A DNA stretch of 64,000 bases from Bugula neritina (taxonomy: Eukaryota; Animalia; Bryozoa): positions 35,116,080 to 35,180,079 of the forward strand of contig OZ037765.1 of NCBI GenBank assembly GCA_964035545.1. Reading direction: 5' to 3'. Below, one piece after another: positions 1-11,600 of the stretch. The position numbers and the translations under genes were made by a program. Below the pieces are notes generated by a model. It worked only from the letters and a program-made list of their open reading frames with translations, did not search any database and was not told where the DNA came from. The stretch's first letter is position 1; every line of letters begins with the position of its first letter.

Positions 1-1155
1 TTCAAATTGATTTTGTTGCAGCAAAGGTCTCCATCTGTTAGAGAGAGGAACCCGAAGTCTAGTTAACAACATTGCAGGTCCTAAACATGCCTCGGAGAGC
101 AACGCTGTTCAGACAGGAAATGTCCGAAAATATGTGACATCTGCAAAATCTAAATACGTGTTAGCATTAAGTCAATCTAAAAACTGACAACTGATTGTAC
201 TATAGCTCTCTTAGTTTATAACATTATACCTACTGACATTGTTCTAATTATATAATAATAATATACTAATATAACATATATAGCTCACACGGAAATGCGT
301 ATTTAGTATAATTTGTTTTTATCATGCATATGTATTATAAAACATGTATATATTCATTGTGGTTTATATTAAATAAAATTTCTTCACTTTAATATCTGGG
401 GAAAGTTCTTGATGTATTATCATCTATAGGTGACAGCCCAATCACTACAAGAGGGTGTTATTCATTCGAAAGCAATCATCTTGTTATTGTCAGCATACAT
501 TACAACTCCACAGCTGTAGTACTGTATCATTTGAGGTTTAGAGCTAAGATGTGGGATTATCACACCAGAAAATGGTAAACTTTCGGAGTTGTCTATTATT
601 GCTACCACGTAAGAGTTACGATCTTGGCACTATTCTGTCAAGTCGAAATGTTACGATGCAATACAGACGCGTAAGAAGCAAACCTGTCGTACAATATTCA
701 CCCTATTGCATTTCGTTGAAGTAGGGAGCTCAATGTGGAGTTACCAGATCCTATCTCATATATTTCTAAGGTACCTTCTGTTCGAGTCTCACTCTGATTG
801 GAATATCAGGTCGGATTTTACTTTATAACTTGAGTCTGATTTCAGAGTCTGGTTACAAAACAGTAACAACATTACAATAATGAATATGGTGACAATTAGT
901 ATTACTAATTCAAAATCAAAATGCTTTGAATTTGATAATCATAAGTTGATTAAGTGATAATCATATTTATAATGATAAACTCATAATGATGATGTCAATC
1001 ACAATAATATTAATATTATAATTGTTATTAGTTCTATTTTTATTTTAATTTAATCCAATTTAATTTCATTATAATTATTCAATATTTTGTTTTATTTTTA
1101 CACTAATACTAATACTAACACTAATAGTAATACTAAGTAATACTAATACTAATAG

Positions 1156-1273
1156 TACTAATAGTAATAGAAATTTAAATTGAATCAGAATATTATAATT
1201 ATTGAATACTAACAGTGATTAAACTTAATTGATAATTCAATGTAATTGTAAAGTTGTGTTAAATTTAATACTA
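1156..1273. repeat. Left arm of perfect 118-bp inverted repeat flanking the LINE
   Basis: Base-for-base reverse complement of 3523-3640. Confidence 0.95.
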
Positions 1274-1279
1274 ATAGTA

Positions 1280-3343
1280 CCAAATCTCTTAAAAACACAA
1301 CCGAAAACAATTAAACTATACAAAAATGCAAATATAACTGGTTTCAGAGACAGTATGCAAACTGTCTGTAACAAACTTGAGGACATGTCAGACCCGGACA
1401 ACATGTGGCTCCTTTTTAGAGAAGGTCTTGCGCAGGCTTGCAAAAATCACATTCCTACAAAAGTTTTAAAATCAAAAAACTCTCGCTGGCCTGTTTGGTT
1501 TGATAAGGAGGCAAAGAAGCTTGCTCAAAAGCAAAGAAAAACTTGGTTTAAGTATAAAAAAACAAGGGATGTGTTTTTCTTGGAGAAGTATAAAACAGAG
1601 CGAAAATCTTGCAAAACATTGCTTCGTCACAAGAAGAGGAACTATGTAGTTGAGAAGGTATGTAAACCATTAGAGAGGGGAAATTCCAAGCCTTTTTTCA
1701 AACACCTGAGGCAAAAAACTGGTCAAGATAATATTTCTATGTCTCTTACTGACCCTGATACTAATCAACTAACTGACAACTCACTGAGATGCGCTGAAAT
1801 CTTGAACAGTTATTTTTATAGTCAGTTCTGCCAAGATCACCAGGTGTCACAATATCCAAATTATAGCAGTGATACTCATAACATATGCATATCCATCAAG
1901 GGGCTTGAGTCACTTATTAGAGGTTTGGCAAATGGTAAATCACCGGGGCCAGACGGCATAAGAAAACCAGACCTATTAGTTGATACTGGAATAAATGCCA
2001 CTTGTCTTCAGCACATATACCATGCCTCACTTAAATCTGGAAAACTACCAAGAGAGTGGAAACTTGCTAATGTAACCCCAATACATAAAGGAGGAAGCAA
2101 GGAATCACCACAGAATTATAGGCCTATCTCTCTCACAAGCATTCCGTGCAAAATGCTTGAGCACATAATCCTGCACTACCTGAATGCAACCCTTGACAAT
2201 ATACTTCACAACAGGCAGCATGGTTTTCGGAAGGGAATGTCATGCGATACTCAGCTGTGCTCAACATACCATGACATTGCCAAAGCGCACGACCAATCAC
2301 AAGACACACATGCAATTGTTCTAGACTTTAAAAAAGCATTTGACAAAGTCCCCCATTCCCTACTACTACTGAAACTACGTCGCATTCCAGAAGTTAACCC
2401 ACAGATTATAAATTGGATTCAAGATTTCATCACCAACAGAAAACAGAGAGTTGTAATCAAAGGCTCATGCTCAACTGAGCTCCCAGTAACATCGGGCGTC
2501 CCCCAAGGATCTGTACTAGGACCCACACTATTCTTGGTCTATATTAACGATTTACCAAGTTGTGTCAATTGTTGTGTCAGTCTTTATGCAGATGACACCC
2601 TGTTGTACCAAAGAGTAAACTCAGAAGCAGATGCTGCAGACTTCCAGGTCAATATCGATGCAGTATATAACTGGTCCCAACAGTGGAAGATGCCTTTTAA
2701 TGAAAGTAAATGCCATGCTATATCATTTGGTCGCCAAACAGGCCTTCCATCTTATAAGCTTGGGAGTACACCTGTCCAATGGACTGAAGAGACCAAGTAT
2801 CTCGGTGTGACCATGCAGAGTAACCTTAAATTTGACAAACACATTGTGCTGAAATCACAAAAAGCTAGCAGAGTCCTAGGAGCAATAAAGTTTGCTCTCC
2901 ATGATGCTCCAAAAAATGGCAAACTCTTGGCTTACACCAGCCTCTGCCGTCCATTGTTGGAGTATGCAGATACCCTCTGGGATCCTTATTTAAAAACCAC
3001 CATACATGATATAGAAATGGTTCAGAATCGTGCTGTGAGGTTCATATCAGGTCTCAAGGGGCGAGAGAGTGTTAGTGACGCTCGATGCGAACTGGGTCTA
3101 CTACCATTACAAACGAGGCGTAAAAATCATAGACTCACACTATTGACACGTATTCTACAGTCTGAAGCCACACACAGTACACTTGCATCAGACTATGATG
3201 AGGTTGTGGAAAATCGCTCTCTCATGTCCGTAACTACGAGATCAGCAGCCCAAGGTTTACCCAACTCCATTTCTTCTCGCTCTAGCTGTTACCACCAAAG
3301 TTTCTTACCAAGAACGATACGCGACATGAGAGGATTTACCTAG
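1280..3343 (+). CDS. LINE ORF2 reverse transcriptase (endonuclease domain missing)
   Basis: Motifs KSPGPDGI, NYRPISLTS, QHGFRKG, LDFKKAFDKV, SGVPQGSVLGPTLF, YADD, KYLGV and C-terminal RPLLEYA / EMVQNRAVRF typical of CR1/L2-type RT; the called start at 1229 lies in flanking DNA. Confidence 0.92.
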   Translation, partial: PNLLKTQPKTIKLYKNANITGFRDSMQTVCNKLEDMSDPDNMWLLFREGLAQACKNHIPTKVLKSKNSRWPVWFDKEAKKLAQKQRKTWFKYKKTRDVFFLEKYKTERKSCKTLLRHKKRNYVVEKVCKPLERGNSKPFFKHLRQKTGQDNISMSLTDPDTNQLTDNSLRCAEILNSYFYSQFCQDHQVSQYPNYSSDTHNICISIKGLESLIRGLANGKSPGPDGIRKPDLLVDTGINATCLQHIYHASLKSGKLPREWKLANVTPIHKGGSKESPQNYRPISLTSIPCKMLEHIILHYLNATLDNILHNRQHGFRKGMSCDTQLCSTYHDIAKAHDQSQDTHAIVLDFKKAFDKVPHSLLLLKLRRIPEVNPQIINWIQDFITNRKQRVVIKGSCSTELPVTSGVPQGSVLGPTLFLVYINDLPSCVNCCVSLYADDTLLYQRVNSEADAADFQVNIDAVYNWSQQWKMPFNESKCHAISFGRQTGLPSYKLGSTPVQWTEETKYLGVTMQSNLKFDKHIVLKSQKASRVLGAIKFALHDAPKNGKLLAYTSLCRPLLEYADTLWDPYLKTTIHDIEMVQNRAVRFISGLKGRESVSDARCELGLLPLQTRRKNHRLTLLTRILQSEATHSTLASDYDEVVENRSLMSVTTRSAAQGLPNSISSRSSCYHQSFLPRTIRDMRGFT

Positions 3344-3515
3344 CTTACCTATCAATTTTCCTTTTAAATATCACTATCTAAATTGAATAATATCAGCGGT
3401 AATGCGGAAGCACTAAAAAAAAAAACGGAGCACTCACTGTCACACACATGAGGCGCTCTACTAACGTCATATGATGGTCAAGAGCGTTCTACCTCATCAG
3501 AGGTAATCAGAGGTA
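1280..3515 (+). mobile_element. 5'-truncated non-LTR retrotransposon (CR1/L2/Jockey-group LINE)
   Basis: Uninterrupted RT ORF, short 3' UTR with an internal A-tract (~3415-3425), tandem tail (ATCAGAGGTA)x2 at 3496-3515, candidate TSD TAATAGTA at 1272-1279 and 3520-3527; no APE endonuclease domain or ORF1. Confidence 0.9.
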
Positions 3516-3522
3516 ATAGTAA

Positions 3523-3640
3523 TAGTATTAAATTTAACACAACTTTACAATTACATTGAATTATCAATTAAGTTTAATCACTGTTAGTATTCAATAATTA
3601 TAATATTCTGATTCAATTTAAATTTCTATTACTATTAGTA
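3523..3640. repeat. Right arm of perfect 118-bp inverted repeat flanking the LINE
   Basis: Base-for-base reverse complement of 1156-1273; extends ~12 bp further with one 3-bp indel. Confidence 0.95.
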
Positions 3641-6294
3641 TTAGTATTAGTAATAGTAGTACAGTAATAGTAAATGTAGTTGTAATACTAATAGTGATGA
3701 CAATAGTCATGGTGATTATTGATGATGATATAATTATAAACTTAAAGTTAAATAAACTCTCAGTATGTGCACGGCTATGAGTACTACTCACAAATAGTTA
3801 GCAATACTATAATAATGCTAATACTAATGTAATACTAATAGTTATAGTACTGATAATGTTGCTGTTGGAGTTTGGGGTTATATTATATTTTTTTTGATAT
3901 AAATAAATTTATACCACTACAACTACACATCTATGCCTTCAGTATCACTATCACTATGCCTTAAATGTCAGTATCAGTATGGCTTTTGACTATCACTATG
4001 ACTTATGACGATGAAGAACATAAATTTAAAACTACAATTCCTTATCAAAACCCAATTACGATTTGATTTAGTATGTAAGATGGATTATTTAACTGTATTT
4101 GTTAAGTTGATTTTGAAGGCGAAAATATAATTCTATAACCATGGGGAATACTGATACACATACTAACTTATGTCGCTTATGTTACTGTTAACTTCTGTCA
4201 TATTAATAGTCTTAGTAAGTGTGTTGATGATCATAATGATAATGATGATATTGTAGATAGATATTAGTATGAGTGGTAGTAATCACTATAATAATACTAG
4301 ATGTAATAGAAGGCCTGCAACCAGCACAACTTAACTTTTAAACTGCAATAAATGATGCAAATGTCTCCACATGGGATTATATTTATTCGCAAAAACTGTG
4401 GATATTGTATTGACTATGGCTATTAGTCTTGGTGTTGGTTTTGCTTTGTGTTTAATGATATTCCTATTATAGATAATAGTAAATATAAAGAACCTTATTA
4501 ACATATAATGTTTTCATTTGCAATTTTATAAATTTCTTAAGCTGTCAACAATACTAATAAGTACAAGTCTAACAATCTGGTTTTCATCATGAATTTCGGA
4601 GATAGAAAATTTTATGCTGCTTAGTTTCAATTCAGTAATTTTTCAATTTAAAGATGGCTGAATTGGAGTTCATATTTAGATAACTATTAGTGATGATGGT
4701 GATAGTGTAATATTTATTTATTTAGTTGCAAGCAGCAACCATCATATCTACGGGTACAATTGGTATAACTCAAAAGTATACAACATTTTAATAAGCTTGG
4801 ACTTTTTAGAGATTATATATCTGAGTGTTGGCAGGCAAAGCTTACAATTGCAGGTTTTATAGTAACGGACAGTGTTGCTAGCAGCGTAATGATGGAGTGT
4901 AGTAAGATTCATAAAAGAAATTAATTACTAAAAGCTGCATGCATATACATTTAGTATTGATGGGAGCAAATTAACTACTTTTTGTAATAATAGATGGTTA
5001 TGAGCAGCGGTGGTTCTCCATTCAATGATTACATCTACTTATACTTGGTGGGATAAAAACTTGAAACTAAATGCTTCTGGTTCTAATTTTATGATGAGGT
5101 ATTTAACTATTTAGTTAGAATAACTGGAAAACTGTTTTTGGTGTGGTGGGGCTGTCTTTAGGAAATGAAAGTCAAGTAAAAGTTTACCTTTTCAGAAAAT
5201 CATCAAATAATACTAATATTTAAAGCTGATAGCGCATCACTTGTTAGTTCAACATGTTTGAATATGTATCAGCTTATTGGCTGAGGTGTGCTGCCTACCT
5301 GCTCACTCATGCATAGCGGCATTCTGCAATCTGTGGACATTTAAAAACTCAATTTTTCACTTGGCAAAATAATTCCTTGTTACAAAAAAGACAGAAAGTT
5401 ATATTTTGTTATAAAGCATTAAAGCATCACATGATGGTATTCCGTGAGCCTAAATCATACTTTACACAGTCTTGGCCTTCCACATTCTGAATACATAAAA
5501 GAAGTCACTTTATTTCGCTGCTCGTCCACAATTGTTGGAAGGTAAATAGACTCTAGTAATGACCATATTGCTCACAGAGTGGAATATAGCACACAGTTAC
5601 TAAACTCTCTCATTACCAACATTTCCCATAATACTTTGCATACTGATGAGGTTAGTAAATTCTAACCCAGGGTAAGTGATGACAAATTACCATCAAGCTT
5701 ACTGTCTGCTCAGGACATCTGGTATGGAATACGTTTCTATGATATATTCTATCACTGATGTAGTGAATGTCTTTCAACTTACTCTCTGCGTCATCCTACA
5801 CTCACGATGCCAAAGCCGTGCTCTACTAACCTACATTTATTTAGTGCACTCTGACCTATTTCTTAGTCAGTCAGTCTGTCTGTTTGCCAGTTTATGTTCC
5901 TGGAGGAGTACGTCACAGTTTTACTTGATTTGTTCAAGTCCTTTCTTAGTTCCCAGGGTTTTCTATTTGGGAAAATAGTTTCATTAGAAAAATGTTCTCT
6001 AAAGTAGATTTATGCTATTCTGACGTTGTTTTTCATATGAAAGCTTAATTCTACTACCAGCAAATGTGTACATCAGAGGAAATATTGACTTGGTGATAAT
6101 ATAGGATAAAGAAATAGTACGTTTTCAAGAGTCAGCAGATTTAAATATTTTAGTAATACAGCAAATGCTGAACCACATAATACCCTCTATAGAATCTATC
6201 TAGGGCAATAATACCCTCTAGAATTTAGCTAGGACAATAATACCCTCTAGTAGGGCAATAACACCCTCAGCTAGGACAATAATAACCTCTAAAG

Positions 6295-8678: not shown

Positions 8679-11600
8679 ATGGTGAGTACATCAACTCACT
8701 TAACTATTAGTCATAGCTTGGAAACTCTGGCTCGTACTAGCACCACATTCAGCTGGTCACATGACACTAACATTCAGCTGGTCACATGACACAAGGGTTC
8801 AGCTGGTCACATGACACTTACATTCAGCTGGTCACATGACACTTACATTCAGCTGGTCACATGACACTAGGATTCTTGCTGAGGGTTTGGTGTGAATTAT
8901 TGATTGGTTGTTTATGATATTTACTGGGTAAATGTCAACATGTTTAGTGATGGGACTGAGCACAGAGTTTCTCTTATTTATATCAACCTTACAGTAGTGA
9001 GTATTCCAGCTCCTGCTTTCAGCTGAATCTTATCTAGTATATTTTTAAATTTACTGGAAAATTGTATAGTTTTGTTATTGGAGAGCCTTTGACACCCAAT
9101 CCAGTTACGTTTGCTACTTGTTACTTGCTAGCACTTGCCACTTGCTAGCACTTGCCACTTGCTAGCACTTGCCACTTGCTAGCACTTGTTACTTGCTAGC
9201 ACTTGCCACTTGCTAGCACTTGCCACTTGCTAGCACTTGCCACTTGCTAGCACTTGCCACTTGCTAGCACTTGTTACTTGCTAGCACTTGCCACTTGCTA
9301 GCACTTGCCACTTGCTAGCACTTGCCACTTGCTAGCACTTGTTACTTGCTAGCACTTGCCACTCGCTAGCACTTGTTACTTGCTAGCACTTGCCACTCGC
9401 TGTAGATGCATGAAAGCAATATTAGTCACACACCCTCAGGGTTTTATGGTGTTAGAAAGCCAGTAGATTACAGACTGAACTGTGCTGCTGGTTTGTAGAA
9501 TATTATGCTGAGTTAGCACGCTATGTGAGGTGCTGAGTTGTTGAAGCTAATGCTAGACTGGAACAACAGCTGCAATATGTATACATGCTGTAGCTGGCTG
9601 TAGTTGGCAGTCTATTAACTTGTATGGTGTACACAGCACCTCTCTATTTCTGTGTTTCTTCTCTCCAGCTTATTGTTGATAGATGAGAACATATAGTACT
9701 GTTGATAGATGAGAACATATAGTACTGTTGATAGATGAGAACATATAGTACTGTTGATAGATGAGAACATATAGTACTGTTGATAGATGAGAACATATAG
9801 TACTGTTGATAGATGAGAACATATAGTACTGTTGATAGATGAGAACATATAGTACTGTTGATAGATGAGAATATATAGTACTGTTGATAGATGAGAACAT
9901 ATAGTACTGTTGATAGATGAGAACATATAGTACTGTTGATAGATGAGAACATATAGTACTGTTGATAGATGAGAACATATAGTACTGTTGATAGATGAGA
10001 ACATACAGTACTGTTGATAGATGAGAACATACAGTACTGTTGATAGATGAGAGGTTATAATTCTGGTATAAATTTTCATTCAAAGTTATATAATAATCTA
10101 AGACTAGTTTATTTTGGTAATGGTGGGCGTGCCACTCACTGCCTAATGACTTTAGCATATTAGCTGCTGATTGCAGATGAGTTCTAATATTAGAGACTGC
10201 AAGTTATAGCATGCTATAGACACACTACATGCTATGATCACTACATGCTATGATCACACTACATGCTATAAACACACTACATGCTATGATCACACTACAT
10301 GCTATAAACACACTACATGCTATGATCACACTACATGCTATGAACACACTACATGCTATGATCACTACATGCTATGAACACTACATGCTATGATCACTGC
10401 ATGCTATGAACACACTACATGCTATGAACACACTACATGCTATGATCACGGCCCCTGTATCACATAATATTGTATTACTTTTAGAATTCAATCCAGGCTT
10501 TCATTCACTTTGTTATTCCAGTGTTCTGGTGCAAATATTTTAACTAATAGTTTAGTTAAAATAGGTCATGATGGGTCCAAGAGATGAAACATGTTAAGTT
10601 AGTTTACACCAGTTGGTTGGCCTGCTTGATATTGTTCAAAGTTGTAGGTGTAGATATATAGGTGTAGATATATAGATGTAAGTATAGGGTGTAGGTATAG
10701 GTGTAAGTTGTAAGTGTAGGGTTTCTTCAGAGGGTCACAGTGGCTTAATAAAGGTGTACTAATCTTAATATCTTCACTGTCTGTTTGTTAATGACTTACA
10801 GTGAATTTTCAGTCAGACTAAGTGTAGAGTAGTACTGAGAGTAGAGTATTACTGAGAGTAGAGTAGTACTGAGAGTAGGGTAGTACTGGGTGTAGAGTAG
10901 TACTGAGAGTAGAGTAGTACTGAGAGTAGAGTAGTACTGAGAGTAGAGTAGTACTGAGAGTAGAGTAGTACTGAGAGTAGAGTAGTACTGAGAGTAGAGT
11001 AGTACTGTGAGTAGAGTAGTACAGTGAGTAGAGTAGTACTGAGAGTAGAGTAGTACTGAGTGTAGAGTGGTACTGAGAGTGGAGTATTACTGAGAGTAGA
11101 GTAGTACTGAGAGTAGAGTAGTACTGAGAGTAGAGTAGTACTGAGAGTAGAGTAGTACTGTGGGTAGAGTAGTACTGAGAGTGGAGTATTACTGAGAGTA
11201 GAGTAGTACTGAGAGTAGAGTAGTACTGAGAGTAGAGTAGTACTGAGAGTAGAGTAGTACTGAGAGTAGAGTAGTACTGTGGGTAGAGTAGTACTGAGAG
11301 TAGAGTAGTACTGGGTGTAGAGTAGTACTGAGAGTAGAGTAGTACTGAGAGTAGAGTAGTACTGGGTGTAGAGTAGTACTGAGTGTAGAGTAGTACTGAG
11401 AGTAGAGTAGCACTGAGAGTAGAGTAGTACTGAGAGTAGAGTATTACTGAGTGTAGAGTAGTACTGAGAGTAGAGTAGTACTGAGAGTAGAGTAGTACTG
11501 AGAGTAGAGTAGTACTGAGAGTAGAGTAGTACTGAGAGTGAACAAGAGAAAGGTGAGATCATAACTTTTCTGCTTTTCAATATTTATTTTGATTTTTTAC

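Follow-up and report, generated by a model that had tools for sequence, protein, structure and literature searches.

How does a long interspersed nuclear element (LINE) come to lie exactly at the axis of a long perfect palindrome? This question is raised by a locus in the bryozoan Bugula neritina, found in a 64,000-nt stretch of contig OZ037765.1 (assembly GCA_964035545.1, positions 35,116,080 to 35,180,079 of the forward strand), hereafter called the window, to which positions refer unless another locus is named. A script-based comparison revealed that 1156-1273 and 3523-3640 are exact reverse complements of each other, i.e., the locus contains two inverted arms of 118 nt (17% G+C), and the identity ends exactly at these coordinates without a longer run. 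The same pair was scored by an inverted-repeat search as arms of 142 nt with 94% identity, and gapped alignment yielded 12 further matching nucleotides beyond one 3-nt indel in the outer repeat tract, after which similarity is lost. An 8-bp direct repeat, TAATAGTA, adjoins the insert at both ends (1272-1279 and 3520-3527). Joining 1279 to 3528, which removes the insert together with one copy of TAATAGTA, restored a perfect palindrome of 237 bp with 118-nt arms and a 1-nt centre, and for this reconstructed empty site a single hairpin is predicted (-127 kcal/mol, DNA parameters). Within the 64-kb window, the pair was the sole inverted repeat of at least 40 nt that does not consist of simple sequence, which excludes chance as the source of the arm symmetry. 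The arm/LINE/arm structure is thus confirmed as real and far beyond chance, and the original prediction for this locus was right in describing exact inverted arms of 118 bp, an 8-bp duplication, and a LINE at the axis of a palindrome that is restored upon its removal.

Judged by its sequence, the insert is an ordinary 5'-truncated, non-autonomous LINE copy. It starts at position 1988 of the family reference, directly past the endonuclease domain, and carries no private substitution in 2240 bp, from which a very young age follows. No substitution differences were found relative to two other copies, and only one relative to the full-length open copy L037. At the truncation point, 1274-1279 shows near-microhomology (ATAG.A) with the LINE, and a BLAST alignment to the full-length reference extends to 1274 with one gap. 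The reverse transcriptase had been described as lacking an endonuclease and as encoded by an intact open reading frame (ORF). The former reflects 5' truncation only, as other copies carry an apurinic/apyrimidinic (AP) endonuclease. The latter does not hold: the frame 1229-3343 is a fragment of ORF2 rather than an intact gene, and it extends into the left arm because no stop codon falls there by chance; an exact-protein look-up of this junction-spanning frame returned no record. The absence of mismatches between the arms had further been taken as a sign of a recent event. Recency is supported for the LINE by its lack of private changes, whereas 118 identical nucleotides say little about the age of the arms.

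A search of the organism's own genome with the inserted LINE gave 44 matches. At least eight copies with 98.5-100% identity extend upstream of window position 1280, are mutually homologous there, and reach about 2 kb further upstream into an AP-endonuclease domain and ORF1. Two complete copies, L037 368-4597 (G000:C8, minus strand) and L036 377-4608, define an element of 4230 bp. In L037, both ORF1 (324 aa) and ORF2 (928 aa) are open; ORF2 matched Exo_endo_phos_2 (E = 5e-13), Exo_endo_phos (E = 9e-8), and RVT_1 (E = 6e-40), and ORF1 gave a weak PHD finger match (E = 2.2e-4, 21.6 bits) below the Pfam cut-off of 24. The 3' ends are alike in 20 copies, which share the same tail, while the starts range over reference positions 1 to 4048 and terminal repeats are lacking. 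All copies carry the hairpin TACCTC-ATCA-GAGGTA followed by a tail of two to three CAGAGGTAAT units. From these sequence features, the element is a retrotransposon of the AP-endonuclease type without long terminal repeats (non-LTR, i.e., LINE). CR1/L2-like LINEs form a clade, also called stringent, with an ORF1 of the PHD or esterase type. The 3' stem-loop and the 10-nt repeat tail seen in the sequence agree with the putative CR1/L2-type label, as would a PHD-like ORF1; the nearest Atlas neighbours of the reverse transcriptase are unnamed RVT_1 clusters. Target-site duplications of the other copies measure 0-8 bp (e.g., ACTGTTA and TAACAG), compared to 8 bp at the palindrome, and their targets are A/T-rich and often start with TAA or TAAT, matching the tail. 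The junctions at the palindrome are therefore typical of the family. Insertion sites showed only a mild excess of TA-period-3 tracts (26% versus 8% at a score of ≥ 0.5; Mann-Whitney p = 0.03). As the inserted copy lacks private substitutions and a near-identical full-length copy has open ORFs, the family looks currently active and the insertion very recent. Two other copies are rearranged. The copy at L019 442-2679 (the same place as L022 and L028; G000:C3, about 19914365-19916605) contains a tandem triplication of a 267-bp segment (reference 3043-3309), and the copy at L014 1507-4481 (G000:C4, about 17989550-17992548) is split at reference position 2760 by about 757 bp of foreign sequence, which is probably a nested insertion.

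The locus is most simply read as an ordinary insertion into a hairpin-prone site. On balance, we lean towards a target-primed insertion of the ordinary kind into a palindrome that already existed, and with the same modest preference regard two separate events of known kinds as sufficient to account for the structure. A pre-existing palindrome, which was one of three models put forward originally, is most economical because every base at both junctions is accounted for; deleting the insert and one TAATAGTA leaves none unexplained. The long palindrome was probably formed when DNA folded back at a short palindrome native to the surrounding tract of six-base repeats. In the left flank, this tract runs in one direction; beyond the exact right arm, about 15 nt of the six-base repeat are inverted and form the end of the palindrome, and near 3652 the repeat reverts to the orientation of the left flank. 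The axis, TACTA-A-TAGTA, is itself a short palindrome of the kind that the TAATAC/TAATAG repeat type yields naturally. It may have acted as the fold-back point at which about 130 nt of neighbouring sequence were copied in inverted orientation, giving rise to a perfect AT-rich palindrome of 237 bp that would have been longer with its imperfect outer ends. Palindromic duplications can originate by fold-back priming at inverted repeats of 5-9 bp (PMC7999016). Elsewhere in the genome, L010 contains at 4971-5011 a perfect palindrome with 19-nt arms and a 3-nt spacer, formed solely by the TAATAC/TAATAG repeat in head-to-head arrangement, which suggests that strand switches within six-base tracts recur.

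The second step would have taken place very recently, when the RNA of an active 4.23-kb LINE was presumably inserted at the axis by target-primed reverse transcription; the anatomy of this step is seen directly, and its course is our proposal. The bottom-strand nick would lie 2-3 nt left of the axis, where the target reads TAAT and matches the RNA tail. This places the implied nick on the border of the unpairable 4-6 nt of a hairpin tip (PMC7999016). A top-strand nick 5 nt right of the axis would then give the 8-bp duplication TAATAGTA. Either reverse transcription ended early or the complementary DNA (cDNA) joined the upstream end at the ATAG(T)A near-microhomology, and both would leave a copy of 2240 bp without the endonuclease. 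The polarity of this near-microhomology is, as we infer from the sequence, the one expected for an upstream top-strand 3' end annealing to the cDNA. The 2.2-kb insert would now serve as a spacer, and hairpin extrusion should be greatly lowered.

Several points weigh against an insertion into a palindrome that came first. No empty allele was seen in the public read contigs, with three other samples lacking the unique flanks. Furthermore, no other long palindrome of non-simple sequence was found in the roughly 187 kb examined (the 64-kb window plus 123 kb elsewhere in the genome), which makes a random hit on such an axis improbable beforehand. None of the 19 other family insertions lies in a palindrome, so that a structural preference of the family is not shown. 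TAATAGTA also occurs at 1150-1157, at the outer edge of the left arm, and an alternative duplication can be drawn from it if the arm was synthesised during integration. Given uniform insertion within the 273-nt palindrome, the axis window comprises about 3% of the positions, and the axis is one of five TAATAGTA sites in the palindrome and one of seven in the wider tract. This position within the palindrome is suggestive only. The improbability of a random hit is tempered by the selection of the case from a scan of the whole genome. Perfect palindromes without an interruption are prone to loss, and those split by a spacer may hence be over-represented among the survivors, which tempers the argument further.

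As to why the axis was hit, it may have been chosen either for extrusion of a hairpin or cruciform, with a nick in the unpaired tip of 4-6 nt, or for a target motif of the TAATAGTA type. We hold the structure-driven version only tentatively, as a plausible refinement that is less likely than not. It supposes that the palindrome extrudes a hairpin or cruciform in vivo and that a nick at the tip, set by the LINE endonuclease or by a cellular hairpin-opening nuclease, primed reverse transcription, whereby a break-prone palindrome became a stable, widely spaced inverted repeat. The original prediction had proposed insertion into the tip of a cruciform; the pre-existing palindrome in this proposal fares well, and targeting of the tip rests on a single case that is not evidence of a rule. 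It had also suggested looking for inverted symmetry at the flanks of the other copies. None was found at 19 sites, where the longest inverted exact match between 200-nt flanks was 6-18 nt and off-register. Neither fold-back synthesis nor palindrome targeting is thus a habit of the family.

The most serious alternative reverses the order of events. One arm may have been made in the same integration by fold-back or remodelling of a broken end that carried the cDNA, leaving the LINE as a loop that separates the original flank from its inverted copy, the outer end of which was joined to the other flank within the repeat tract. We consider this fairly unlikely, and favour insertion into an existing palindrome over it. 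Its precedents come from human L1, for which integration was reported to give short inverted duplications of flanking DNA as well as foldback junctions with L1 (bioRxiv 10.1101/2024.12.14.628481). The reported small inverted duplications, however, have a genome-to-genome inversion junction with 2-bp homology and place L1 beside the arms instead of between them, and the L1-containing foldbacks are large-scale (same source). In its favour, the arms are identical and the insert is extremely young, the TAATAGTA at 1150-1157 could pair as a duplication with 3520-3527, and the rarity of long non-simple palindromes in the DNA examined points in the same direction. Arm synthesis, however, gives no account of ATAGTA at 1274-1279, which would be filler and yet by coincidence supply the missing part of an 8-bp direct repeat and of a perfect axis; this makes it less economical. 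In addition, no suitably oriented complementary stretch appears to be available from which the cDNA end could prime on its own strand, and the absence of flank symmetry at all 19 other family insertions argues against it as well.

The 118-nt arm and its 95-nt non-repeat core matched the assembly (216 Mb in 321 chromosome-scale pieces) only at 1156-1273 and 3523-3640, even at E ≤ 10; the suggested genome search with the arm hence gave two matches, both at this locus, and identified the arm as single-copy. No Rfam family was matched at E ≤ 1 across 900-3900, and the arms are not hammerhead-ribozyme palindromes. A size of about 240-270 bp and an almost entirely palindromic form would suit a foldback element or one resembling a miniature inverted-repeat transposable element (MITE) that was later hit by the LINE, but the single-copy core, the lack of an Rfam match, and the fact that the repeat tract permits neither discrete ends nor a flanking duplication to be assigned make this very improbable. 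The third of the original models, a composite mobile unit with a reverse transcriptase gene between terminal inverted repeats, drew on the look of an open frame between inverted arms. We reject it as next to impossible: the arms are unique in 216 Mb, the LINE lacks such arms at no fewer than 19 other sites, and the insert is truncated relative to its autonomous 4.23-kb family, whose sequence runs on into the endonuclease and ORF1 at eight or more sites. An assembly artefact, in which a mis-join created one arm or misplaced the LINE, is in our estimate highly improbable, too. It would fit the observation that none of the contigs listed from the probable source run crosses the structure; they end at 1131 and 3629. 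However, short-word contigs must break at a 118-nt inverted repeat accompanied by microsatellites, and chimeric fold-back reads would mirror the LINE, which is not mirrored. Moreover, the two junctions are clean and show the kind of duplication usual for the family, and the chromosome-scale pieces of the assembly suggest long-read data.

The public reads were queried with a layout of 4401 letters, which returned only short-word contigs, and the joint and depth tables were swamped by microsatellite noise from the repeat tracts. The runs carried symbiont, biofilm, and marine plankton metagenome labels, which would suit a colonial animal from the sea, and the probable source run held 0.87 of the sampled words. 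This run showed no difference over 200-1131 and 3629-4600, and its contigs end in repeat tracts, as one would expect where a 118-nt inverted repeat has microsatellites on either side. Three other samples had zero depth over 494-787 and 4022-4168, and two exact-pattern metagenome scans with arm words gave no match. A contig of sample X4 that overlaps the arm contains the 6-bp insertions ATTATA and ACTAAC at 1191 and 1207, a region at which X4 and two further samples showed roughly single-copy depth. These arm-like contigs may stem from a single-arm allele that has diverged, or they may be spurious matches in low-complexity sequence.

Compared to known systems, the insert resembles a canonical 5'-truncated CR1/L2-like insertion in belonging to a family with AP-endonuclease and reverse transcriptase, in its complete 3' tail and short target-site duplication, in its truncation with near-microhomology, and in an A/T-rich target that matches the tail. 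LINEs of the stringent type recognise a stem-loop in the 3' untranslated region (UTR) (PMC5135761). What sets the present case apart from a canonical insertion is the target, the axis of a long perfect palindrome, for which we found no report in the literature searched. With the L1 inverted duplications and foldbacks it shares a LINE tied to inverted copies of the flank and the appeal to fold-back at very short homologies; those events are somatic or from cell culture, and their L1-containing foldbacks are large copy-number changes (bioRxiv 10.1101/2024.12.14.628481), whereas in the present locus the LINE lies between 118-nt arms and the axis is covered by a direct duplication. In its inferred empty state, the site resembles palindromic AT-rich repeats, being AT-rich, several hundred bp long, and spacer-less with near-perfect arms. 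The palindromes most prone to breakage have long, identical, spacer-less arms (PMC7999016), and their breaks or nicks are expected at the tip of 4-6 nt (PMC7999016; also PMC4940405). Palindromic AT-rich repeats give rise to translocations and deletions, while retrotransposon capture at the tip is not described in the literature we found. Among bacterial retroelements, class C group II introns take DNA hairpins or cruciforms as their target signal. The same is known for diversity-generating retroelements (PMC3240598). As in these bacterial elements, insertion by reverse transcription took place beside a DNA stem-loop; the bacterial systems, however, show a repeated structural requirement, whereas one event was seen here and no family-wide preference at 19 sites.

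If the choice of the axis was indeed structure-driven, the locus would be a rare natural germ-line record of hairpin tips as LINE entry points in an animal. Under the same condition, it would also show a fragile palindrome being defused by the insertion of a transposon, a kind of palindrome 'repair' through retrotransposon capture. The locus is a single, well-defined natural case that is testable, and not evidence for a new mechanism. As the family is active and the insertion essentially new, the site may still be polymorphic, and a recoverable empty allele could directly tell whether the palindrome came first. The features of the locus are compiled in Table 1.

Table 1. Features of the interrupted palindrome and the inserted LINE, in window coordinates (TRF, Tandem Repeats Finder).
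Feature	Position	Strand	Basis
Left outer flank, loose six-base repeat of TAATAC/TAATAG type	1095-1155	+	TRF period-6 array at 1102-1154
Palindrome continuation after the 3-nt indel, inside the left outer flank	1141-1152		Gapped arm alignment
Left palindrome arm, exact, 118 nt, single-copy core	1156-1273	.	Exact reverse complement and genome search
Left target-site duplication copy TAATAGTA, spanning the symmetry axis at 1274	1272-1279	+	Sequence
5'-truncated LINE copy, positions 1988-4230 of the 4230-bp family reference	1280-3519	+	Alignment to reference
ORF2 fragment without endonuclease	1280-3343	+	RVT_1 only; 3' UTR after it
Reverse transcriptase domain, Pfam RVT_1	2093-2812	+	hmmscan E = 3.5e-40, residues 272-511 of the frame from 1280
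LINE 3' end: 6-bp stem-loop TACCTC-ATCA-GAGGTA, then (CAGAGGTAAT)x2 plus AG	3490-3519	+	Fold z = -3.3; TRF period 10 at 3496-3517
Right target-site duplication copy TAATAGTA	3520-3527	+	Sequence
Right palindrome arm, exact, 118 nt	3523-3640	.	Exact reverse complement
Right outer flank	3641-3700	+	Sequence; TRF arrays at 3627-3658 and 3636-3695; alignment

Regarding the surroundings, no recognisable gene lies closer than 12 kb to the palindrome. Owing to two minisatellite arrays at 9615-10158 and 10849-11580, the minus strand shows long open frames of repeating peptide units, which are artefactual.

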